Part shown: in pieces, positions 2,951 through 55,793 of the stretch
Layout of the letters: every line of letters starts with the position of its first letter
Position numbering within the stretch: the first letter of the stretch is position 1
Source of the DNA: Selaginella moellendorffii
Taxonomy: Eukaryota; Plantae; Lycopodiophyta
Direction of reading: 5' to 3'
Length of the DNA stretch: 64,000 nt
NCBI RefSeq assembly: GCF_000143415.4
Contig: NW_003314308.1
Location: 62,001 to 126,000, forward strand
The notes under the pieces: generated by a model
What the model saw: only the letters and a program-made list of their open reading frames with translations
Database searches by the model: none
What the model was told of the DNA's origin: nothing
Program-made: the position numbers and the translations under genes

Positions 2951-3529
2951 TACAGTATGAGACTTTAAATCCCTTAAAAACACAAAAATTTCAAACTCTT
3001 TTGTTTTTACAAAGAAAATCTCTACACATATGTGGTCACTGGTGATGGTCTCCTAGACAGCGAGAGTTCCTTGTCGGCTCAGTCGTGGCAAATGCTGCCA
3101 GACACTTCACACGAAGAATTGACACGTACTAGGACGTGATCAGACAGATCCAATAGTATCACCACTCTAGAATCCTCTGCAGGAAAAGCACAAAGTGAAG
3201 ATAATAACATGGTAGTCATAAAGCCTGAGAATAGATTGAAGACCGAGTATCACAATAACATGAGGTTACCCAGCAGTTTAGCTAATCTAATTAAATGATT
3301 TCACCTTTCTGAGTTAAGTGTACTTTCGAGGTAGAGAATTATGGCACAGACATAGGATATCGTTAAGGAAAGCGAGCATCGCTCGCATCACTAGTGCCTC
3401 CAACTTAAGAAAAATAGGCCTTGCACTGCCGAATCCATTCTTCAGGAAGCACAAGTACTTCTTGGATGGCACTTGCACTCTTCCTATCCTAATAAACCAC
3501 ATTACATAAGTAACCATAGTAAACACAGA

Positions 3530-4075: not shown

Positions 4076-4623
4076 TTACAGGTTGCCAGTAGTGACTGTC
4101 TTGGGACACATCTTGGTGCAGCCAAAGCCATTCCGCTCGCAGCAGTAGTGTTCCACACCATCCTCGCACTTCCACAGGCAGCCAAATCCATTCTTGAGAC
4201 AGCAGGAGTACTTTTTCGATGTCTCACAGTTCTGCATGCACCCAAACCCATTCTTAAGGCAGCACTGGTAATTTTTGCCTTTCTCGCACTCCTGCATGCA
4301 GCCCCATCCGTTCCTGAGGCAACAGTAAGTTTCGCCAACAACGCTGCTTAGTGCTGCACACAAAAGAAATGATGGAAACAACAGTTTGAAGAGCTCAGCC
4401 GGGGTGAATATATTTGCAGCACCTTTGTTTTCCAGGATAGTAGACACATATCGTGGATCATGCGTCGCATCCACCCCTCCCGCAAAGATCGTGTCTGTGG
4501 AACAACACTTTTCAGCATTACGCAAATGAAAATTTGCAATATACCTGCTTCATTGTCGACGCGAGTAGCATTGACAGCTGCGAGCAGCACAAGAACGATG
4601 CAGGTAACTGGAGCCAGGGCCAT
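4076..4623 (-). CDS. secreted cysteine-rich tandem-repeat peptide precursor, copy A (142 aa; exons 4545-4623, 4423-4494, 4076-4353)
   Basis: GT-AG introns splice in frame to give a hydrophobic signal (MALAPVTCIVLVLLAAVNA), a pro-like region and four 20-aa CCxxNG[FW]GCxxxC repeats. AATAAA lies downstream of the stop. Confidence 0.85.
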
Positions 4624-5535
4624 GACTATCTGAAAACAGCAGATCTGATAGAAGTGGCATTTCATGTGTCCAATTTAAAGAAACAGTATGCGGGGACCAG
4701 TAAGATACTAGGAATAAGTCAGGACCATCAGTGAGAGCGAGAGTTTCTTGTGGGCCTCCAAACACCTAAGGCATGATAGACAACGAGATAGTCGGGACCA
4801 CTTGAAAGTCCCTTTATTTGTGGCCAACTACCAGATAGAGACTAAATTGCCAATAGCATTTTCAAGGTTTGGTTTGTTCTCTTGATAAATATTTAGAGGT
4901 GAACAACACTCACTCCTAAACAGGGGTCAAGTTTCAACAAGCCTTTCTGTACAATCACGAGATCAAAACATCAGAACGTTCATCCTGCTCCTGGTCTACG
5001 CCACGATGAGCAGCTCCATTGTTTCCGTGTTCCCGCGGGTTCAGCAATAATCTTTCTTCTAGCGAACGGACGTCGCTGCCACCAAATGTCCCTTCTCGTC
5101 CTGCTTGAACTTTCTGTTCGATGACCACATCACAGAACGAGAAATAGTCTTTTGGGTTGGTAGCCCAATGAGTCTAGTGCTGTTCTGGCTTACCATGGTT
5201 GCCTTGTCTGACGTAGAAGCCTTCCTTTCAAACTCAGAACTTAACTTGGCTTCTTTCTTCCCCCCAAGCTCTTCTCTGCTTTCCACACTAACAGATCAAA
5301 GGTGGTGTCCGTCCCAGCCAGTCCTGAATCTCATCCCTCAATCCGGACTGGTAGTAGATGCGCTTACTGAATTCGGGTATTGCCTCCGTCATCCTAGACA
5401 AGAGCTCCGTAGTCATTTAATCCATCCTTGTATGCTCACTTCTCTTCTTCATCACTACGGTGAATGCACTCTTTCAAACAGTACGCCAACGAAAGCTTGC
5501 AATACCACTAGCCATGTCGGCCATGTCTACTTTGA

Positions 5536-6822
5536 TCACGCTGGAACCGCTATAGCCTCCACTGATAGAAGCTTCCCTTTGGTTTTGCAGCTTTCCAAGA
5601 TCTGTGCTTGCGTTTTCTTATTGTAACTCATTCGGTGGGACTTCATCACTCTGTAGAGACGACGAACGTTTTCTATATCACCGCCCGCGGCATAGGCTCG
5701 GATCATCGTCTGCCACCATTCCAGATTCTTTGTCTTTACACTCTGAAACACCACCTCGGCGTCCTTCAGGCTGCCCAGCCGGATGAAGAGCTCGAGGAAG
5801 CGCCTGGCAGTCTCAAACTCGGTGGCCATCCCCAACGACGATAAGTGTGCGTGCAGCGCTCGAGCGTCCTCCAGGCTCGAGCACGCATTCATCGCCTCTT
5901 GGCACATCCTCGCGTTTAGAGACGTTTGCTGTGCCGGGTCCATATTGAGGAACAGCTTGAGCGCCTCCCTCGACTGTCCTCTCTTCTTATACGTCCCCCA
6001 CACCTTCTTCCAGGTCTCGGATCCAGCGTCAACGATGACAGATCCTAAAGCTTTGCTGGCCTCCTCGATCCCTCCAACCTTGTCATACGTATCGATGAGC
6101 TGATTAACGACGGGCAAATGCGAGCGCCACCGCGAGGTCGCGAGACAAAAGTGGACGAGCTTGGCCTCCTTGAGACCGCCCATCTCCCCACAGGCCTTGA
6201 GAACCTCCGTGTAAGTCACGGGCAGTGGCGGTGAGCCATCCAGTATCATGTCCCGGAAGAGATTGAAAGCGTCGCGATGCCGTCCATTCTCGGCCATGGC
6301 GACGATCGCCGCCGTCCAGCCCTGCTCGTTCTGCCGCCGCAAGCCCCGAAAGACCGATACCGCCGCGTCGGGGAGGCCGCATTTTCCATACGCCGTGATG
6401 AGCATCGTACCCAGCGATCGATTGCAGCGCTCGGTCATGACTATGTGATTGTGAACCCTGCGAAGATCCGGTGCCGCCTTGAAGCTGATACAGTGCCGGA
6501 GCATACCTTCTAGGGTCGCCGTCGTCGCCTCGCAGCCCTGGCATTCCAGGAGCTCCACATCCTTGCCGACGATCCCCGTCGCCTCGGCCGGATCGTAATC
6601 TACCGATGCTGGCGTGGCGACTGTGGCGACAAGCAGCAGGGAATCGCGCGGCCGCGGCGGCGGCGGAGTGTAGGGCTCCTCTGCGTCGCGCCGCGTGTTC
6701 CTGAGCTTGCTGCGCATCAGCGCCTTGGCGACGATCTCCCTCGTCTTTGGCCCATCGAGCCGGCCGAGCCGCATTGTCCCAAGAACCCTAAACCCATCCC
6801 CCGCCGAGTTATCCTTCTCCAT
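5536..6822 (-). CDS. intronless pentatricopeptide repeat protein (PLS-like motifs)
   Basis: 428-aa ORF with PPR motifs such as LGTMLITAYGKCGLPDAAVSVF, WTAAIVAMAENGRHRDAFNLFRDM, VTYTEVLKACG and WQTMIRAYAAGG. The start codon is uncertain. Confidence 0.85.
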   Translation of the reverse strand: MEKDNSAGDGFRVLGTMRLGRLDGPKTREIVAKALMRSKLRNTRRDAEEPYTPPPPRPRDSLLLVATVATPASVDYDPAEATGIVGKDVELLECQGCEATTATLEGMLRHCISFKAAPDLRRVHNHIVMTERCNRSLGTMLITAYGKCGLPDAAVSVFRGLRRQNEQGWTAAIVAMAENGRHRDAFNLFRDMILDGSPPLPVTYTEVLKACGEMGGLKEAKLVHFCLATSRWRSHLPVVNQLIDTYDKVGGIEEASKALGSVIVDAGSETWKKVWGTYKKRGQSREALKLFLNMDPAQQTSLNARMCQEAMNACSSLEDARALHAHLSSLGMATEFETARRFLELFIRLGSLKDAEVVFQSVKTKNLEWWQTMIRAYAAGGDIENVRRLYRVMKSHRMSYNKKTQAQILESCKTKGKLLSVEAIAVPA

Positions 6823-9800
6823 GCTGTTTTTAGGGTTTTCTAGGTCTTTCGTTGGGAAATGGAGATTCCGCGCTCGAGGAGATCGCCGAGTAACACAACG
6901 ACCCTTTCTTTGGGAAATGGATGCCGCAGGAGATCGCCGAGTTCCCCGGGATTACTTAGCTGCCAATCCCTGAGCGCTTGGGCCATGGCCGGGGATGGGC
7001 ATCAATGACGCACTCTTTTATCTCTTTTATATTTTGTTTGTGAAAGGGACTTGGACGACTTTCATGAGCTGTGTCTGAGGTGAAGGCAAAGGTGGAGAAT
7101 CACCGATGACCATGATCAACAAATCCCTGCGAGAAACATCCAAATGTAAATCATGGAGCTTGTGTGTGACATGTTGAGGAACTTGAGTATGCGAGATTCT
7201 GCTGCTAGAAGGCATGGAAATCTCGTGGTGCATTCCCACTGCTGCTCCTGGCAAAGGAGGCACTGAGCTCACTTGGGGGGATCTGGACCTAAACCAACGT
7301 GTGAAGGCACAGGCTTCTTTGCTTGACCTCGAGTATTTGCGGCGACCGACCGCATGGATGCCAGCAACTTTCTTTCCTTTGTCCAAAGGTGGCGGGGCTT
7401 TGATCGCGCCTTGCTGAAAAGTCTGACGATAGCTCGACTCAGCTGCAAACGAGGAGTTGTCCACCAAAGGGTGCTGCAGAACCTACTAAGGCTGCAGGCG
7501 TTGCTCAGGGTGTAACTTCCAACAGCACAATTCGTCCTGTGTACTCGATTTGCAGTGATTGCAAAAGAGACGATGGCATGGAGGACAATCAGCAGCATAC
7601 GTCCTAAGGTGTCTCAACTCTTATAAAATCTCTGCTTGCTGTGTCTGTGTTGTTGGAGGAGAATGTGATATTATTGCATTTCCACCAACGCGGCATCTAC
7701 TGTACTTGCAGATGTATCCTCTGGAGCATGAGCTGGAGGAGCTCTGTTGATGACGCAAGCATGATCAATGACAAGAGAGGCATATATTTGTCAAATTTGG
7801 CAATCCCGAGCTCTAAGAGCATCTCCTTCTCTAGCTGTGCAACAAAGTTGAAAGCCTCTAAGCAGCCAAACCATTGTTTTTCAGCACGTGTTTTTCACAT
7901 GTGCTTATGATCTTCACGCTCACTCATCCCACTCATTGTCACACACACGATGATCACTGATACAACAAAACACCAAGATCTTGTCCGCCTCGTTGCTGCA
8001 AATCTCAAGCTTCGCGCACTATAAGCATTGTGTAAACTTCGCCCATGCATCTAAACATGTCCAACCAGGGACCCTTGATTGCCTCCGGATCAAAACTCTT
8101 GATGCAAAAATTAGATAAATGACTTCCAAAAACCTTTCCTCATTGCTTCATATAAAATGCCACCTTTCTAAAAAGATTCTCAAGATTCCATGCAAGCCTT
8201 TAGTGGCCATCTTGTAACTAACCACACAAGCCTCCCCTCCAGCTCTCAATCTCCTCCGCGATTGCAGTGTTGCACACACAGCTGATAAGTCTTCCCTCTT
8301 GTTTTATTCTCTTTTTTTTGGCTTTACCCAAGGAAAGAGTTTTATGTAAAGAGCTTGTTTTCTAATACTGTGGCGTGTAGAGCCGAAGCTCAAGGCATGG
8401 TTGATTCTGGTGAACTTGTAACTACCCATGGAGCACACCCATAGAGCATAGAGCCTTGCTTGTTGTGCCTCACTTGGTGCTGCGGCACAACAATAGCAAT
8501 CCAGACTCAGAGAAGTTCTTTAGTGTAGTTTGGCTTGCGATTGTGACTAGCTGCACCGGTCTGTTACTATAGTTGCAAAAAAATAGAGGGTTTTTGATGT
8601 TGTTGATTTTGTGTTCGTATAGTAATTCTTACCTTGGAACAAGTTACCAAACACATGAATCAATTAGAAATTAATTTAAAACCTTTAATCCCCAAGAAGG
8701 CTCATGCAAGTGGCTGTGAATAAAGATAAACTTAACATCACTAAAATACTTTAGTCTTAAGCAAATGGATATGCATTTGTGATAGATTAGAATATAATAG
8801 AGATAAGGATAGGGGTCAAATGCTAACTCTCCCCCTTAACTATTCCTTTTTCTTGAGTCTTAACTATCAAGATTGTAACCTTAAGTGTCAAGGTCATAAT
8901 CCTAACTATCAATAAAATGCTTGAATACATAATTAATTTGTTGTACTTCATTAGGTCTCTTAATACTTGAAGGTAGGTAATAAATCGCCACACCACCTTT
9001 GTTATTGACTTCATTGTAACCAATGCCCTTTTCCATACATAATTTTTTACGATGGTGCACATCTTTTTGATTGTTGTCTCCAACATTGGCCATATTGAAA
9101 GATGATACCAGATGAATAGGAAGATGATATTCTTCATCAGCACCACCCAAGCCACAAGCCCAAGCTTTCATGGAGTCCCTTTGTTGATCATGGTCTTGAT
9201 TCTTCTTAGAAGTGTGCCATTTTGAGTTGCTATGTTGAAGTTGACTCTCACCTGTATTCCTAAATACCATATGTCCTCACCTAGCTTACACCATTGAAAA
9301 CCAATCCTTTGCCCCCATGAGGTCCCCAATTGACCCCCACTGATTTGTTTTAGATGATGGCCTCTTGCAGCCAGCTTAAAAGTCTTGAGCATGCTTTTCT
9401 TGTATCCAGATTTGGAGAGTTGGAGGAAGATTCAGCCAATTATGACACTTATAGCATTCATTTAAGTTTCAATTTTAAAATTGTAAAACCACTAAATTTT
9501 AAATGATTGTTCAATCAGGAAAAAAAGAAGAGCATACAAGATATAAATCAATCCCAGAACAAGGTAAAGTGTTTAGATAACAATTTTTTATTTTGTAATT
9601 TTTGTAAATAGAAAGAAAATTGCCTAAAGCTCTTAAAATACTTTCAAAGTATGAGTTACAATGACTAGAGAATATTGCAAAACAAAAACAAAACTTATTG
9701 ATCTCAGACCAAAAAATGTCTTCAATATGAAAGTTCCATATATCAGCAAGGAAAAGATACTAGTACATTAAAATGTCAAAACAAGGTATTATGACTTTTT

Positions 9801-11099
9801 AGCATAGCACAACTATATTAATGTCATTGGTTTTATTCTAGGATATTCAAACCAATGAAGAAAAGGATGAAGTAGAGGTAAGACACTATAAGCTTACTTT
9901 TGTCTGTGACTAACAAAATTACAGGGAGAATAATTACTTTATGAGCAAGAGGACAATCTAAACTCTAACAAGGTAATTTATATATTTTTTGATACATCTT
10001 CACTTGTTTAGGAAATGTAGGCCATTGAAGATCCTCCTGAGAAAAGGCAAGGTTTGATTATTATATTTTGCAGAAAAAAAAAACTGCAGTGAAGTTTTCA
10101 ACATACCCTTGAATAGAGGTAAATACAATCAGTACAGAACTCAATGGTGTTTAAAAGGCATAATTGGGTTTCCTTGCTAGATTTTGAGTTTGGCAATATT
10201 GCTGAAGCTAAACTTGAGCAAGTAATTAATTGAGTATTGCTTAAAGCCTAGAGTAGGCATGATGTTGATCCTTAAGAGGATATGAGATGGATGAAATTCC
10301 ATATCCACTAGAAGACTCTTCAAGGAGTATAAGTTTATACATATGATTTCTTATGCTCTTGCTGTAAGTGTGTTCTAATATAGATTTGTATTTATAACAG
10401 TTCTTTCTTTTTGGTTGAAGGCAAGGAGGGAGCATGAGGAGCAATCTATGTGAAAAAGGGTATATGTGTTTGAAAGAGTACAATAGTTATTGCAAACAAG
10501 ACTCTATAAAGATGCATGCGGTTGGGGCCAGTCTGTCCATATACTGGTAAAGCATAGTTTATATTTGTATTATTGTTAATCTTTAAAATAGAGAAAAAAG
10601 TACTTGTGTTAATAGTTTATGTCTTGCATTTTTTTTCTATTCAAACATATTATTCACCATTCAAATAGTGAAACATGTCATAGTATATAATTTAGCTATG
10701 TAATTTATGGCCAAACTACAGTCTAATATAGTTGAATGAGTAGGAAGTGGCATAGTTCACCTAGCCACAAGTTTCTAGTTGTATTGAATCCCTAGGGGAC
10801 ATAGTGCAGCTGCACCATGCCCATCTGTATTTGTGCAATGTTTTCACTACATGCTTAGTTTTTCCTTGACACAACGACGCCTTACTTCTCATCAATTCGG
10901 TTTGTTAATATGATATTTTCTTTGGATAGTGCCAAGTAGTATGTTATGCGGCACTTCACATGATTGTGGACAGGCAGCTGGGAACAAACTATCGCAATAG
11001 CAATGACCTCAGATTTTGAGTGTGTCAATTTCCCAACAATTTTTAAGGTCCATGGTGGTCTTTTTCTATGCAGCTCAGCTCACTTTTTTTCCTGTAACC

Positions 11100-11744
11100 G
11101 CACCAAGATATGTCATCTCGCTGAATACTTGTAGTTCACAAGGATATGCCTGTCCTTTCTGGAAGACCGATAGAGGAGGAAATGCAGCAGTTGGAGCTGT
11201 TTGGTGCTTGTACTAGCACAACAGTGTTGGCATCTTTTTCAACTGCCACATTGGATAATGAATTGGGATCGCCACCAGTTTCCGTCGTTTTCGTTCTCAT
11301 TTTCTCTCTGTGATTCTTAGGAAATAGTGGATCGCTTTTGGTTTTCTATGTTTGACTGTTAGTAATTCCGCTAGTTTAAGCTAATGAAGCTATTTCAGAC
11401 AAGGACAAAAATACCTCTAACATTGTCAAACCATCCTTGTTGTAAATCTGTTGAGATCAACAAGTTGTTCTGTAACCTGTCCTCCTTTCGGACCCTTGAG
11501 CTCGACACCATCGCCTGCTGCTCAAGGTCATTAAACGGTATTATCAGCTCCTTTCATGAAAACAGTATTTTAGGTTAGAAAGCAGCATCCTTTACCTGCC
11601 GACCAAGATCGGACACAACAAGAATCTTCGAAAACAAAAGAAAAACGCAGGCAAAACAGGAGTGATTACCCTTCCATCAGCTTCCACAAATGGCTCTCAT
11701 TGCCGGCACATAACCGTTCATCGTCAACTGCTTTCCACCATTGG
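11100..11744 (-). pseudogene. inverted, deleted fragment of the TFIIIC subunit gene
   Basis: Reverse complement matches ~16340-17375, including intron sequence (e.g. aggatatgcctgtcctttctggaaga), with many deletions. Confidence 0.85.
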
Positions 11745-12207
11745 CGCTGGATCCGAGACCTGGAAGAAGGTATAAGAAGAGAGGACAGGCGCTCAAGTTG
11801 TTCCCCAATACGGACCCGGCACAGCAAACGTAAAGATGTGCCAAGACGCGATGAATGCGTGCTCAAGCCTGGAGGACGCTCGAGCGCTGCATGCACACTT
11901 ATCGTCGTTGGGGATGGCCACCGAGTTTGAGACTGCCAGGCGCTTCCTCGAGCTCTTCATCCGGCTGGGCAGCCTGAAGGACGCCGACGTGGTGTTTCAG
12001 AGTGTACAGACAAAGAATCTGGAATGGTGGCAGACGATGATCCGAGCCTATGCTGCGGGCGGTGATATAGAAAACGTTCATCGTCTCTACAAAGTGATGA
12101 AGTCCCACCGAATGAGTTACAACAAGACAACGCAAGCACAGATCTTGGAAAGCTGCAAAACCAAAGGGAAGCTTCTATCAGTGGAGGCTGTAGCGGTTCC
12201 AGCGTGA
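11745..12207 (+). pseudogene. 5'-truncated copy of the PPR gene 3' half
   Basis: The C-terminal 123 aa are nearly identical to those of 5536-6822. The fragment is fused directly to the TFIIIC remnant at ~11744. Confidence 0.85.
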
Positions 12208-13064
12208 TCAAAGAAGAGGTGGCCAACATTGCAAGCTTTCGCTGCCGTACTGCTTGAAAGGAGCATTCTCCTGAGTGATGAAGAGAAGTGAGCGCGATGG
12301 AGGGTATACACGGATGGACAAAATGACTACGGAGCTCTTGTCTAGGATGACGGAGGCAATACCCGAATTCAGTAAGTGCGTCTACTACTCGTCCGGATTG
12401 AGGGATGAGATTCAGGAGTGGCTCGATCTGGATGACAGATGCCACCTTTGATCTGTTAGTGTGGAAAGCAGAGAAAGAAGCCAAGTCAAGTTCTGAGTTC
12501 GAAAGCAAAGCTTCTACGTCAGACAAGGCTATCATGGTAAGCCAGAACAGCACTAGACTCATTGGGCTACCAACCCAAAAGCTCAGTACTATTTCTTGGT
12601 CTGTGGCGGGGTCATCGAACAGAAAGCTGAAGAAGTTCAAGCAGGACAAGAAGGAACCTTTGGTGGCGGCTAGAAGAAAGATGATTGCTAAACCCGCGTG
12701 AGAAAAACAATGGAGCTGCTAGGAGCAGGATGAACGTTCTGATGTTTTGATCTCGTGATTGTACAGAAAGGCTTGTTGAAACTTGACCCCTGTTTATATT
12801 TATCAAGAGAACAAACCAAACCTTGAAAATGCTATTGGCAATTTAGTCTCTATCTGGTAGTTGGCCACAAATAAAGGGACTTTCAAGTGGTCCCGACCAT
12901 CTCGTTGTCTATCATGCCTTAGGTGTTTGGAGGCCCACAAGAAACTCTCGCTCTCACTGATGGTCCTAACTTATTCCTAATATCTTACTGGTCCCCGCAT
13001 ATTGTTTCTTTAAATTGGACACATGAAATGCCACTTCTATCAGATCTGCTGTTTTCAGATAGTC

Positions 13065-13625
13065 ATGGCCCTGGCTCCAGTTACCTGCATCGTTCTTGTG
13101 CTGCCATTCCTGGTGCTCGCAGCTGTCAATGCTACTCGCGTCGACAATGAAGCAGGTATATTGCAAATTTTCATTTGCGTAATGCTGAAAAGTGTTGTTC
13201 CACAGAAACGATCTTTGCGGGAGGGGTGGATGCGACACATGATCCACGATATGTGTCTACTATCCTGGAAAAAGAAGGTGCTGCAAATATATTCAACCCT
13301 GGCTGAGCTCTTCAAACTGTTGTTTCCATCATTTCTTTTGTGTGCAGCACTAAGCAGCGTTGTGGGCGAAACTTACTGTTGCCTCAAGAACGGATGGGGC
13401 TGCATGCAGGAGTGCGAGAAAGGCAAAGAGTACCAGTGCTGCCTCAGGAATGGGTTTGGGTGCATGCAGAACTGTGAGACATCCAAAAAGTACTCCTGCT
13501 GCCTCAAGAATGGATTCGGCTGCCTGTGGAAGTGCGAGGATGGTGTGGAGCACTACTGCTGCGAGCGGAATGGCTTTGGCTGCACCAAGATGTGTCCCAA
13601 AACAGTCACTACTGGCAACCTGTAA
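13065..13625 (+). CDS. secreted cysteine-rich tandem-repeat peptide precursor, copy B (146 aa; exons 13065-13155, 13206-13277, 13348-13625)
   Basis: Same exon structure as copy A, with an in-frame 12-nt (PFLV) difference in the signal peptide. All 16 repeat cysteines are conserved. Confidence 0.85.
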   Translation: MALAPVTCIVLVLPFLVLAAVNATRVDNEAGILQIFICVMLKSVVPQKRSLREGWMRHMIHDMCLLSWKKKVLQIYSTLAELFKLLFPSFLLCAALSSVVGETYCCLKNGWGCMQECEKGKEYQCCLRNGFGCMQNCETSKKYSCCLKNGFGCLWKCEDGVEHYCCERNGFGCTKMCPKTVTTGNL

Positions 13626-13884
13626 ACTGGATATGTACTGTGGCTCTGGATATGGATGTATGGGTTTGGCTGCCGCCAGAGTTTAAATAAAATGCTACTA
13701 TTATACGCAGAGCTCTCTTGGCTCCGCTCGTAGATCTCCCATCCTCAAAGCCAACCGATGCATTTTTTAATAGGAGGCACTAGTGCTGCCAATGAATGTT
13801 TTCGTTGGAATTGGGGCAGACGTGGCAAGGCCCATGCCTTTAAGGAGGCCTTTAAGGAATGTGTGGATGTCAACTTTGTACTGG

Positions 13885-14135: not shown

Positions 14136-15184
14136 TTGTGTTTACTATGGTTACTTATGACTGCTGTGAGAGGAATGGCTTTGTCTGCCCCAAGATGTGT
14201 CCCTATGAAGAATGCCAGGAATAATTTGATCAGATTCCAGTATAGGATGTAGTTTGCTGGAACTCGCTACTTACAGCTCAGAACGGATATAGTGGTATGG
14301 CTGCCGCCTGAATTTGAATAACTAAAGCACTATTATATGAGTATGGACTATCTTTTTAAGTTGGAGGCACTAGTGATGTGAGAGGTGCTCGCTTTCCTTA
14401 AGGATATCCTAAGTACTCCCTGTGCCATAATTCTCTACCTCAAAAGCACACTTAGCTCAGAAAAGTGAAATCATTTATAAAGAGACTAGCTAAACTGCTG
14501 CGTAACCTTGTGTTATTGTGAAAGTTCTTGCTTTTTCGTCATGTTATGTACTATAATCGGTCTTCAATCTATTCTCGGGCTTTATGATTCCCATATTCTT
14601 GTCCTAGTATGGAGACCGTCTATGTGTAAAAGTTTTTAATATTTTCTTTGGGAAAATAAAAGAGTTTGAAACTTTTGTGTTTTTTGGGATAAAGTCTCGT
14701 ACTTATATTAGAGATGTCCCAACACTTATTAAAGTTTTCAACTAAAATTATAATATTGAATGTATTTCACTACAAAATTAAGCAAGCTAAATGCTGGGTA
14801 ACTGGAATAAAAGTTTTTGCTAGGATTGCATGTAGTAGCCACAGCTGAGCTCTGAGAATTACTTTAATTGGATAGTGTAAAGTTGTGATGAGTTCTGTAT
14901 AAATGTAGCACTTTCCTTGACGACTGGAAGATCAGATTCCAAGTCTTTAAAATTCTGAGAAGATCCTCGGCTTTTAGCTCCTGGACTTTCTTCAAGGCGT
15001 GTTCCTGGCTCAAATGGACGCGCTAAGATGTACAGTGTTTCTAGACAGCAATATAGGGACAGCACCGCCAGATCCTGGGGGCAAGCTCAGCCATCCAGGT
15101 AGTAGTAGGAACCGGCAGCCTTTTGTTCGCGATCTTTGGTGGAATCGAGCGTGTTGATCCGCGGCCTAAAGTTTGCTTGTTCTG

Positions 15185-15515
15185 CCACCGCAAGCCCCGA
15201 CCTCCGGGAGCCCGCATTTCCCATATGCCGTGATGAGCATCGTGCCCAGCGATCGAGCGCAGCGCTCAGTCATGACGATATGATTGTGAACCCTGCGATG
15301 ATTCGGCGCCGCCTTGAAGCTGATACAGCGCCGGAGCATACCTTCTAGGTCGCCGTCGTCGCCGCATTCCAGGATCGTTGTCGACGATCCCCGGATCGTA
15401 ATCTACCGATGCTGCGCCTTGGCCACAATCTCCCTCGTCTTTGGCCCACTGCCGGAAATCTCCTCCTAAGAACCCTAAACCCATCCCGCGCCGAGAATAT
15501 CCTTTTCCGTGCCTC
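15185..15515 (-). pseudogene. degraded 5' half of the PPR gene
   Basis: Direct-repeat similarity to ~6335-6830 with multiple deletions. The start ATG is lost. Confidence 0.8.
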
Positions 15516-22516: not shown

Positions 22517-23746
22517 TCAAGCTTTTATGACTTTCTTCACCAAATCAACGCTTTTGGCTTTTCGTTGGTTGGCATGTTTTATAAGAGCCGGCAGCTCCCA
22601 GTCCAAAACCCTGTCACCAAATATAACTCTGGCAATACCTTTCACAATAGTTAGTTCCTCTTTGAGTGCCTGTCCTTCAGCAATGGGATACTTGTTCATG
22701 TTGAATGCATTCTTTCTAAATGTGGCAGTTCCCACAAGTACATTGGTCGCGATTTTAAATTCTGGAACGTATTCAATTTTTCTTGCTGCCTTTGATGCAT
22801 TGACTGCTGCTGCACTCATGTTGCCATTCATTTCTTTGGTTAAACTGTCCAGCAAATCCTTGTCACTTAATGACTTGGGATAACGCTTCTCCATATTTTT
22901 TACCTCTTCAGTTTTACCCTTCTGCTTGAGATAAGCAATCTTCAATTCCACGTGCTTCCTAAACTCTGGAATACCTGAAAGCTTCTTCTCCTTACTTATC
23001 AAAAACCCAATAGGATCAATCACTGCACACCCAACCCATTCAATTCCCATGACCACAACATAAAACTTCTTAAACCTGTGGCGTTTGATGTTGTCTACCA
23101 AGGATCCAACCCCATAGTTCAAACCTTGGTAGAGGCCAAATGTCCACTTTTGGTTGCCTTTCATCTCAAAGATGGATCTTCCGGCAACTTGATTGTTGTC
23201 ATATGTAACAAGTCCTCGTACATCAACTGCCTCACGACCCTTTAGATGAGTTCCATCTTCGTGAATGAAGGTGTCACCTGTGAAACTAAATCCCGATCGA
23301 TCTGACTCTCTAGATGAATTCGAAGCCCGTGATCCTGGTCGAGATGGATCTGGTACCTCTTCAAGCGCATCAGTAATAGAGCTCATATCAAAACTAGATA
23401 CAGCATCTTTCTTCATGTTCTTCATGTCCTCACCGTCAAGTAGTTCACCTTTCTTGGGAGCCAAACCGGCAAAGACAGGAAACATGGCACAAGCTACTGG
23501 CCTGTACTGCACTTCGGTCAAATTGGGCCTGCGTGCGTAGCATTCTCCAAACTTTTGCATCTCCAGAATGACTTCCTCCAGCAGGTAACTGGAGACTTGT
23601 TTGTCGAACTTTGTAAGCTTTCCATCTTCAAATTTTGTTATTTTACCTTCCTTCACTTGAACAAATGGATTGCACAGCTTGAAGATGTTCTCATCCTGCA
23701 TGGCGTTGGATGCAATATCAGATGCATTGATGATTTTCCTAGCCAT
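22517..23746 (-). CDS. intronless orphan protein (~409 aa from MARKIIN; frame open to 23980) with a putative PD-(D/E)xK nuclease domain
   Basis: Long uninterrupted ORF with an ATG in good context (aagATGg) and AATAAA just after the stop. Motif order is VDV...FEMK...GLYQGLNY...MGIEW. The function is inferred. Confidence 0.7.
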   Translation of the reverse strand: MARKIINASDIASNAMQDENIFKLCNPFVQVKEGKITKFEDGKLTKFDKQVSSYLLEEVILEMQKFGECYARRPNLTEVQYRPVACAMFPVFAGLAPKKGELLDGEDMKNMKKDAVSSFDMSSITDALEEVPDPSRPGSRASNSSRESDRSGFSFTGDTFIHEDGTHLKGREAVDVRGLVTYDNNQVAGRSIFEMKGNQKWTFGLYQGLNYGVGSLVDNIKRHRFKKFYVVVMGIEWVGCAVIDPIGFLISKEKKLSGIPEFRKHVELKIAYLKQKGKTEEVKNMEKRYPKSLSDKDLLDSLTKEMNGNMSAAAVNASKAARKIEYVPEFKIATNVLVGTATFRKNAFNMNKYPIAEGQALKEELTIVKGIARVIFGDRVLDWELPALIKHANQRKAKSVDLVKKVIKA

Positions 23747-24699
23747 CTTGCTTCTCCTTGCTCTCCTGGTACACGGCTGAAATGCCTTCAATTCTGCGCC
23801 ATTTAATAGCCTGACTTCCTTTCCGTGATGAACTTCTCTTCTGTACTGTAAAGCACTTGGACTTATGTGCCCACAAGAAAAAGTCTCCTGATTGTGCGCA
23901 AATTCAATATGTCCAGTGATCATTTCTGGATTGAATGCAAATTCAGTGAATGGGCCTGGACATTTCCCAATTGTCTGCAAATTATAGCAATCATATCTGG
24001 GTTGTATACAAATTCAAGTCACCTGGAGACACGTCATTGAATAGAAAATATCTCATTATAAAAGGTCTTCCACGCCATGTTGTCCTGGCACAACTCACAC
24101 ACTGCCGTGTTTACATAATTTATGTAAGTGGCAACCAAAAGTGCAAATCAGCCACAAACTCAAAGAAGATTGCTGAAAGAAACAGCAAAAAAAAAAACAA
24201 ACCATTCCCCAAGACTGGAATTCCTAGCATATGCCAGCTAAAATCATTCCACACTTCTTCATTAGATTATAAATTGACCAAAATGCTTAGGAGTAGGTGG
24301 AAAGTTCAAGGTTAAGAGTCTTTTCGAGCAAATTTTCCTAGAAGGCACAGTATATGTCTGGTGCCACGCCAATGATTTGACGAGTATACGCACATTTCTG
24401 TACAAACACAAGTTTGTTTTTGTGATTTAGGGTTTGGACTGAAGGCTTGAAAGAAATAGTAAATGAACAACCTAGAAAGGAACTTTTTTTGTTTGATTCA
24501 AATGCTAACAATTGTCATCTTGGTAGCTCTTGGTGTTATTGCATTGCATGATTATTACAATGTGTAGGTGTATTGAAACACTCAAGGCTAGAAGTGGTGG
24601 TGCTCCAAATAAAACTTTGGTTTGGTTTAGAGGAACTCCAAATGGTTATTTCAATGGTTTTGCATGATGTAGGAATTAGCCTGAAAAGTTTCAAAGTTG

Positions 24700-48760: not shown

Positions 48761-49119
48761 NNNNNNNNNNNNNNNNNNNNNNNNNNNNNNNNNNNNNNNN
48801 NNNNNNNNNNNNNNNNNNNNNNNNNNNNNNNNNNNNNNNNNNNNNNNNNNNNNNNNNNNNNNNNNNNNNNNNNNNNNNNNNNNNNNNNNNNNNNNNNNNN
48901 NNNNNNNNNNNNNNNNNNNNNNNNNNNNNNNNNNNNNNNNNNNNNNNNNNNNNNNNNNNNNNNNNNNNNNNNNNNNNNNNNNNNNNNNNNNNNNNNNNNN
49001 NNNNNNNNNNNNNNNNNNNNNNNNNNNNNNNNNNNNNNNNNNNNNNNNNNNNNNNNNNNNNNNNNNNNNNNNNNNNNNNNNNNNNNNNNNNNNNNNNNNN
49101 NNNNNNNNNNNNNNNNNNN
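48761..49119. other. assembly gap (N run)
   Basis: Ns in sequence. Confidence 1.
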
Positions 49120-55249: not shown

Positions 55250-55793
55250 NNNNNNNNNNNNNNNNNNNNNNNNNNNNNNNNNNNNNNNNNNNNNNNNNNN
55301 NNNNNNNNNNNNNNNNNNNNNNNNNNNNNNNNNNNNNNNNNNNNNNNNNNNNNNNNNNNNNNNNNNNNNNNNNNNNNNNNNNNNNNNNNNNNNNNNNNNN
55401 NNNNNNNNNNNNNNNNNNNNNNNNNNNNNNNNNNNNNNNNNNNNNNNNNNNNNNNNNNNNNNNNNNNNNNNNNNNNNNNNNNNNNNNNNNNNNNNNNNNN
55501 NNNNNNNNNNNNNNNNNNNNNNNNNNNNNNNNNNNNNNNNNNNNNNNNNNNNNNNNNNNNNNNNNNNNNNNNNNNNNNNNNNNNNNNNNNNNNNNNNNNN
55601 NNNNNNNNNNNNNNNNNNNNNNNNNNNNNNNNNNNNNNNNNNNNNNNNNNNNNNNNNNNNNNNNNNNNNNNNNNNNNNNNNNNNNNNNNNNNNNNNNNNN
55701 NNNNNNNNNNNNNNNNNNNNNNNNNNNNNNNNNNNNNNNNNNNNNNNNNNNNNNNNNNNNNNNNNNNNNNNNNNNNNNNNNNNNNNNNNNNNN
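55250..55793. other. assembly gap (N run)
   Basis: Ns in sequence; probably hides the last ATG2 exon. Confidence 1.

Follow-up and report, generated by a model that had tools for sequence, protein, structure and literature searches.

Plant secreted cysteine-rich proteins are a source of antimicrobials, protease inhibitors, signalling ligands, and stable scaffolds for peptide engineering. The Ib-AMPs of Impatiens balsamina are highly basic peptides of 20 residues with the framework CC-x8-C-x3-C and the disulfide pairing C1-C3 and C2-C4; their precursor holds six modules, which are separated by acidic propeptides of 16-35 residues (PMC10136942). In multimodular α-hairpinin precursors, the signal peptide precedes 5-12 four-Cys modules arranged in tandem (PMC10136942). 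Granulins have a 12-Cys motif that forms four stacked β-hairpins pinned by six disulfides, and the plant granulin is a single module at the C terminus of a papain-like cysteine protease (PMC4527844). Bowman-Birk inhibitors are defined by the nine-residue loop CT-P1-S-x-P-P-x-C (PMC7760496). Here, we describe two genes, termed A and B, that encode a tandem array of four cysteine-rich modules in a 64,000-nucleotide stretch of the Selaginella moellendorffii genome (contig NW_003314308.1, positions 62,001-126,000; hereafter the window). An earlier note, made from the sequence alone, had taken the DNA to be of plant origin and the modules to represent a candidate new peptide family. The source is indeed a plant, a lycophyte, a group whose peptide repertoire is little studied.

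Genes A and B encode four cysteine-rich modules

Both strands of the window were read and the genes were translated exon by exon. Gene A (4623-4076, minus strand) and gene B (13065-13625, plus strand) are both intact and consist of three exons each, in agreement with the gene structures first proposed for them. All introns are of the GT..AG type, lie in phase 1, and measure 50 nt and 69/70 nt. The spliced product of gene A is identical to a public protein of 142 residues (P0008, EFJ17823.1), and that of gene B is identical to a public protein of 146 residues (P0006, XP_002980971.1). The public records of both genes (GenBank/RefSeq and UniProt) list them as "hypothetical" or "uncharacterized" proteins.

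A spacer of ~35 residues separates the predicted signal peptide from the repeat domain. In both proteins, the domain is composed of CC-x6-C-x3-C modules in which the Cys gaps of 0, 6, 3, and 7 residues recur four times, giving the exact 20-residue period that had been claimed; the exon translations returned the same modules. The signal peptide call was made from hydropathy only. The N terminus of every family member is signal-like: 11 residues whose mean Kyte-Doolittle hydropathy is 2.5-3.3 precede small residues such as V-N-A or A-D-A.

The family is so far found in a single species

A profile search retrieved 16 protein clusters, all from S. moellendorffii. A phmmer search with exon 3 against 1.84 billion representatives revealed no relatives outside this species; its matches comprised three genuine relatives from S. 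moellendorffii, plus a mis-fused gene model (P0015) and a chance match (P0016). The family members are stand-alone proteins of 121-150 residues; they contain 3 or 4 modules, and their 12 or 16 Cys are invariant.

Alignment of 22 sequences sharing 34-97% identity showed the spacing CC-x6/7-C-x3-C-x7-CC, in which C-x3-C and the x7 gap between modules are invariant. A conserved Tyr is found two residues before the CC pair in modules 2-4, and module 1 has Tyr or Phe one residue before it. The conserved module core comprises Asn or Asp, frequently Gly, an aromatic residue or Leu, and a Gly that hardly ever varies. Conservation extends to the position after C4, which is acidic, or Pro in the last module, and the final motif is C-P-K. 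Cys makes up 18% of the domain, which has a net charge of 0 to +7 over 69-91 residues and an isoelectric point of 6.8-8.9.

Searches of curated resources provided no name for this pattern. Pfam-A hmmscan returned no family for the exon-3 translations (E ≤ 0.1) or for five proteins (P0006, P0008, P0002, P0010, and P0011), and the precomputed Pfam assignment was empty for 16/16 clusters. In the PDB, profiles built from full proteins, from the domain, and from a single module found nothing, or chance matches with E ≥ 0.4. None of six family locus tags was cited in the papers searched, and searches of these papers for Selaginella granulins and cysteine-rich peptides gave nothing on the present family. 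The claim of a novel family thus holds as far as Pfam, structure, and paper matches are concerned, but the gene models were already public, and the automatic UniRef name "Granulins domain-containing protein" has been given to many members, although not to all of the family. The earlier note had not considered this link to granulins.

Four domain copies, one of them a pseudogene, form a tandem cluster within 20 kb of one scaffold. The pseudogene (L003, 11163-11339, GL377567.1) is unannotated, has an internal stop, and has lost Cys. In this cluster, family members are interleaved with pieces of Peptidase_S28 and Spb1/FtsJ genes. Such dynamics, with one-species clusters, tandem copies, and relics, are typical of defence-type cysteine-rich proteins.

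On balance, genes A and B appear to be functional and to represent two members of an uncharacterised family of small secreted cysteine-rich repeat proteins, known so far from S. moellendorffii only.

Both gene copies are kept under purifying selection

Between exon 3 of gene A and that of gene B, 7 codons differ synonymously and 3 residues are changed (R/K, K/R, and N/E), whereas all Cys and all NGxG are identical between them; our recount reproduced the numbers reported before. The analysis of dN/dS, suggested in the earlier note as a check, gave a Nei-Gojobori ω (the ratio of the nonsynonymous to the synonymous rate) of 0.12 for exon 3 and 0.20 overall, with a synonymous excess at binomial p = 0.0014. 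Both copies are kept under purifying selection.

Among the paralogues for which the DNA was retrieved, ω ranged from 0.1 to 0.5. Synonymous divergence (dS) is saturated between subfamilies, at values above 2, indicating that the family is old within its lineage; this predicts homologues in other Selaginella species. The true relics (L003x and two in the window) carry stops and Cys losses. Because these relics have decayed and the intact copies are conserved, the intact copies are evidently being maintained.

Transcripts support the splicing of gene B

Expression evidence was drawn from four runs, including contigs and reads from X1, X3, X4, and X21. RNA confirmation of the introns, which had been called for, was obtained for gene B. 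An X1 contig (depth 189) lacks both gene B introns, with the intron 2 joint offset by a variant allele. In an X3 contig, intron 2 is exactly missing; this contig stops at 13705 and then carries a poly(A) tail of 25 A. Gene-A-type contigs in X4 were unspliced and of low depth.

The X21 run, a 2026 RNA-seq data set, contains few reads at the gene A/B locus. In the 12% of this run that was covered, about 2,900 reads, anchored on 35 shared bases, run into the paralogue P0017, which is highly expressed and gives the most abundant transcript observed. The P0017 reads cross the exon 2/3 junction over a 67-nt intron at the homologous position, revealing that the three-exon structure is conserved.

Some further observations concern the transcripts and their start. 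The X1 contig departs from all four assembled copies by a variant of 6 bases where exon 2 ends and by the loss of 12 nt from the 3' untranslated region; it therefore represents a further allele or accession, or is chimeric. An in-frame ATG is located 14 codons upstream of the used ATG in both genes (window positions 4665, minus strand, and 13023, plus strand). It lies in a weak context (C at -3, A at +4), and the second ATG has G at -3 and G at +4. The RefSeq model of gene A (P0001, 156 residues) starts at the upstream ATG. A single X21 read of gene A type, placed at the homologous site upstream of gene B, extends to the equivalent of 12920. Gene B also has an unspliced open reading frame of 186 residues, its introns (50 + 70 = 120 nt) containing no stop; those of gene A (119 nt) are not open. 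The openness of gene B through its introns is probably a coincidence. An intron-retaining gene B mRNA would remain translatable.

The domain is predicted to be a chain of β-hairpins

We modelled the repeat domain alone with AlphaFold2, using an alignment of 20 sequences. The model has a mean predicted local distance difference test (pLDDT) score of 86.3 and a predicted template modelling (pTM) score of 0.71. It consists of eight predicted strands of 7 residues (5-11/14-20, 25-31/34-40, 45-51/54-60, and 65-71/74-80), corresponding to one β-hairpin per module. The predicted turns span 2 residues, directly after Asn-Gly, and the connections between modules span 4 residues. In the model, the conserved Asn is placed at the end of the first strand, adjoining the turn and within the CC-x6-C loop.

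No meaningful match to the domain model was returned by Foldseek against the PDB, by VIA-align (in a wide search and a second look), or by the ESM Atlas shape search. The ESM Atlas feature search gave chance-level scores and no informative match among named clusters.

We lean toward reading the gene products as intact, secreted, disulfide-pinned β-hairpin-repeat proteins of the apoplast. In this reading, where we infer secretion, disulfides, fold, and a defence or binding role, the N-terminal signal peptide would take the protein into the endoplasmic reticulum, and the 16 cysteines would form 8 disulfides. Each 20-residue module (Y-x-CC-x2-N-G-aromatic-G-C-x3-C-acidic) is predicted to form one β-hairpin with NG-aromatic-G at its tip, and four successive hairpins joined by such short connections would make up a single rigid all-β unit. 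The protein would work uncut outside the cell, its length being determined by the number of modules (3 or 4). The conserved tips, each with one aromatic residue between glycines, may be where the protein is likeliest to touch its apoplastic target, whether a polysaccharide or another protein. Like other plant cysteine-rich proteins that are lineage-specific, tandemly amplified, and highly expressed, these proteins would most likely serve in defence or binding. A single folded unit fits better than a row of independent beads with the invariant 7-residue gap, the conserved border residues, and the domain prediction.

Several points weigh against this reading. The near-neutral domain is unlike classic cationic antimicrobial peptides. 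The full-length AlphaFold2 prediction (9 sequences) reached a pLDDT of only 39.6, and one of the five domain models reached 52. The domain model was built on a shallow alignment of sequences from a single species, and AlphaFold2 is known to mis-assign disulfides in disulfide-rich peptides (PMC11035057). That members differ in their number of modules (3 or 4) is just as compatible with a polyprotein. Finally, a spliced gene A transcript was not seen among the contigs and reads of the four runs.

Alternative readings

The alternative that survives best is a polyprotein, in which the secreted chain would be cut between modules to release two-disulfide peptides of 13-20 residues (paired C1-C3 and C2-C4, as in Ib-AMPs and α-conotoxins) that act as antimicrobials, inhibitors, or signals. 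The Ib-AMPs, missing from the earlier note, are the closest known plant analogue of this idea, and their 20-residue CC-x8-C-x3-C modules, derived from one six-module precursor (PMC10136942), are close to the 20-residue CC-x6-C-x3-C modules found here. A pro-like region after the signal peptide and a module number that differs by exactly one module within the family are also compatible with processing. However, the modules are not separated by spacers: the next CC follows C4 after only 7 residues, 3 of which belong to strands in the model. The family alignments show no conserved dibasic or Asn/Asp site at the module borders, the modules are not strongly basic, and the pTM of the domain model indicates a confident relative placement of the modules. 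We therefore consider release of the modules rather unlikely. Of the two mechanisms that had been put forward side by side, the disulfide-stapled repeat protein fits better, and the polyprotein is the less likely, given the lack of spacers and of a conserved cleavage site.

The earlier note had also pointed to Asn as the cleavage residue of asparaginyl endopeptidases. Release by these enzymes at the conserved Asn was rejected. This residue lies beside the hairpin turn, inside the first disulfide loop (CC-x6-C), and a cut there would therefore release no module. Only one linker Asn occurs in gene A; its counterpart in gene B is Glu, and this residue is thus not conserved.

A second alternative, which we regard as clearly unlikely, is that the proteins are highly diverged members of the granulin superfamily, forming a stand-alone hairpin stack in which alternate CC pairs have been widened to C-x3-C. 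In the granulin motif, four CC pairs spaced 5-8 residues apart are flanked on either side by two single Cys. The motif includes a CC...G-x-W-G-CC stretch, which the CC...G-aromatic-G-C of the Selaginella modules resembles. The UniRef name speaks for this relationship, but its restriction to part of the family suggests borderline automatic matches. The four stacked β-hairpins, six disulfides, and four CC pairs of granulins (PMC4527844) find a parallel in four predicted hairpins and four CC pairs. A "Granulins domain-containing" cluster is among the top ESM Atlas feature matches, but its score of 0.76 is at chance level. Searched with the Pfam Granulin profile (PF00396), five members gave no match at a threshold as loose as E ≤ 10, and none of the 16 clusters has a precomputed Pfam match, to Granulin or otherwise. 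No granulin chain was found in the PDB with the domain or single-module profile at E ≤ 10, and Foldseek and VIA-align searches with the domain model retrieved no granulin structure, although the model has four hairpins. Moreover, the 12-Cys spacing is absent, the CC pairs being 20 residues apart with a C-x3-C between them, and plant granulins have been reported only as single C-terminal modules of cysteine proteases (PMC4527844).

It is very improbable that the genes encode no disulfide protein at all, being instead a metallothionein-like metal-binding or other intracellular peptide, or an expressed pair without maintained function: the Cys content of the domain and the upstream RefSeq start of one model, which would put 14 residues before the hydrophobic segment, could be taken that way, but the hydrophobic signal-like N terminus is conserved in all paralogues, the Gly/Asn turn motifs and the conserved aromatics set the proteins apart from metallothioneins, and selection is purifying family-wide while true relics nearby have decayed.

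Duplication, gene conversion, and neighbouring features

Genes A and B lie in an inverted duplication of ~2.1 kb (~6032-3900 versus 11741-13790) whose arms are 94% identical (Table 1). The other assembled haplotype (L001, GL377619.1) carries the same inverted pair, and the duplication is therefore older than the haplotype split. The pair arose by this inverted segmental duplication, and both copies have been under purifying selection since.

In a four-way comparison, the region from exon 2 to the 3' flank showed allelic grouping, gene A clustering with its allele on the other haplotype (A-h2) and gene B with B-h2. The 5' part behaves differently. Within exon 1 and upstream of it, gene A is identical to gene B (4545-4900 versus 12790-13155), exon 1 showing 0 differences apart from a 12-nt in-frame deletion in gene A that is absent from gene B and from the gene A allele of the other haplotype. 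Compared with A-h2, gene A differs at 7 positions in exon 1 and at ~20 positions upstream. Since the 5' part of gene A matches gene B and not A-h2, the promoter and first exon have been converted by gene B in this haplotype.

The earlier note had also stated that the co-duplicated neighbours have decayed. This is true of arm B, where the PPR remnant is truncated to the last 166 codons and its frame is broken by indels of 11, 9, 4, 6, and 12 nt relative to arm A; in arm A, the PPR gene is intact. Two decayed module relics are located ~520 nt downstream of their respective gene, in the outer part of the arms, where the alignment is weak, and they are probably leftovers of a former tandem neighbour.

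Table 1. Positions of the gene parts, duplication arms, and module relics in the window
Feature	Position	Strand	Description
Decayed module-3-like relic	3428..3466	-	Downstream of gene A; lacks the third Cys and one of the paired Cys (CC)
Arm A	3900..6032		Gene A, intergenic stretch, and 3' end of intact PPR gene (open reading frame 5536-6822, -)
Gene A exon 3	4076..4353	-	Entire four-module cysteine-rich domain and stop codon
Gene A exon 2	4423..4494	-	Spacer/pro-like region; phase 1 on both sides
Gene A exon 1	4545..4623	-	Start codon and signal peptide (predicted)
Arm B	11741..13790		Truncated, frame-broken PPR fragment (11740-12207, +) and gene B
Gene B exon 1	13065..13155	+	Start codon and signal peptide (predicted)
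Gene B introns	13156-13205 and 13278-13347	+	
Gene B exon 2	13206..13277	+	Spacer/pro-like region
Gene B exon 3	13348..13625	+	Four-module cysteine-rich domain and stop codon
Gene B AATAAA and poly(A) addition site	13686-13691; after 13705	+	AATAAA 14 nt before the contig end (X3)
Decayed module-4-like relic	14150..14203	+	Downstream of gene B; tblastn E = 5.6e-4

The neighbours in the window include PPR, B-lectin, TFIIIC, and ATG2 genes, in keeping with a plant genome. A third PPR-like fragment (15196-15396, minus strand), 69% identical to residues 84-154 of the PPR open reading frame at 5536-6822, lies directly upstream of the TFIIIC (GTF3C1-like) gene at ~15.4-20.7 kb. An intronless open reading frame of 487 residues at 22517-23980 (minus strand) had no Pfam match at E ≤ 0.1. 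Runs of N, which mark assembly gaps, occur at 48761-49119 and 55250-55793, and open reading frames spanning them are artefacts.

Comparison with known systems

The family presents a regular, short-period disulfide repeat, with four Cys every 20 residues, that has no curated description or structural neighbour. If the hairpin-repeat unit is true, it would offer a compact scaffold of tunable length, and the questionable "granulin" label could be removed from public databases. If the modules were released instead, Ib-AMP-like polyprotein processing would gain a second plant example, one remote from the angiosperms.

Bowman-Birk inhibitors resemble the Selaginella proteins in being small, secreted, and very Cys-rich plant proteins with repeated subdomains, and S. 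moellendorffii is named in papers on these inhibitors. Membership in this group was rejected, as the CT-P1-S-x-P-P-x-C loop is absent from all aligned members. The α-hairpinin precursors likewise carry tandem four-Cys modules behind a signal peptide in a single plant chain. However, their CxxxC...CxxxC pattern forms a helix-loop-helix, in contrast to the CC-x6-C-x3-C of the Selaginella modules, which are predicted to be all-β. Having one C-x3-C per module, preceded by CC, and an all-β model, the family was not assigned to the α-hairpinins.

Granulins/epithelins (PF00396, SM00277) are, like the predicted Selaginella domain, small secreted all-β domains with four CC pairs. They contain 12 Cys in ~55 residues, with two more in plant granulins, compared with 16 Cys in ~80 residues here, and in plants they are fused to a cysteine protease, whereas the Selaginella proteins stand alone and have no protease domain. 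On the basis of the model, the likeness to granulins would be architectural at most.

Ib-AMP1-4 share with the family 20-residue, four-Cys modules of the CC-xn-C-x3-C type, several of which follow one signal peptide (PMC10136942). They differ in the first loop (x8 versus x6/x7) and in charge, each Ib-AMP having 5-6 Arg compared with near-neutral modules in Selaginella. Their acidic propeptides of 16-35 residues contrast with the abutting Selaginella modules, which are joined by 4-residue loops. The solved structure of Ib-AMP1 lacks β structure, whereas the Selaginella modules are predicted to be hairpins. PDB profile searches returned no Ib-AMP chain. Thus, the combination typical of Ib-AMPs, a highly basic CC-x8-C-x3-C module with acidic propeptides of this length, is not found in the family. 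Its members do show the general features of plant secreted cysteine-rich proteins: they are small, have an even number of conserved Cys and a hydrophobic N terminus, and belong to a multigene, lineage-specific family. The novelty is at the level of a family within this well-known class and involves no new principle.

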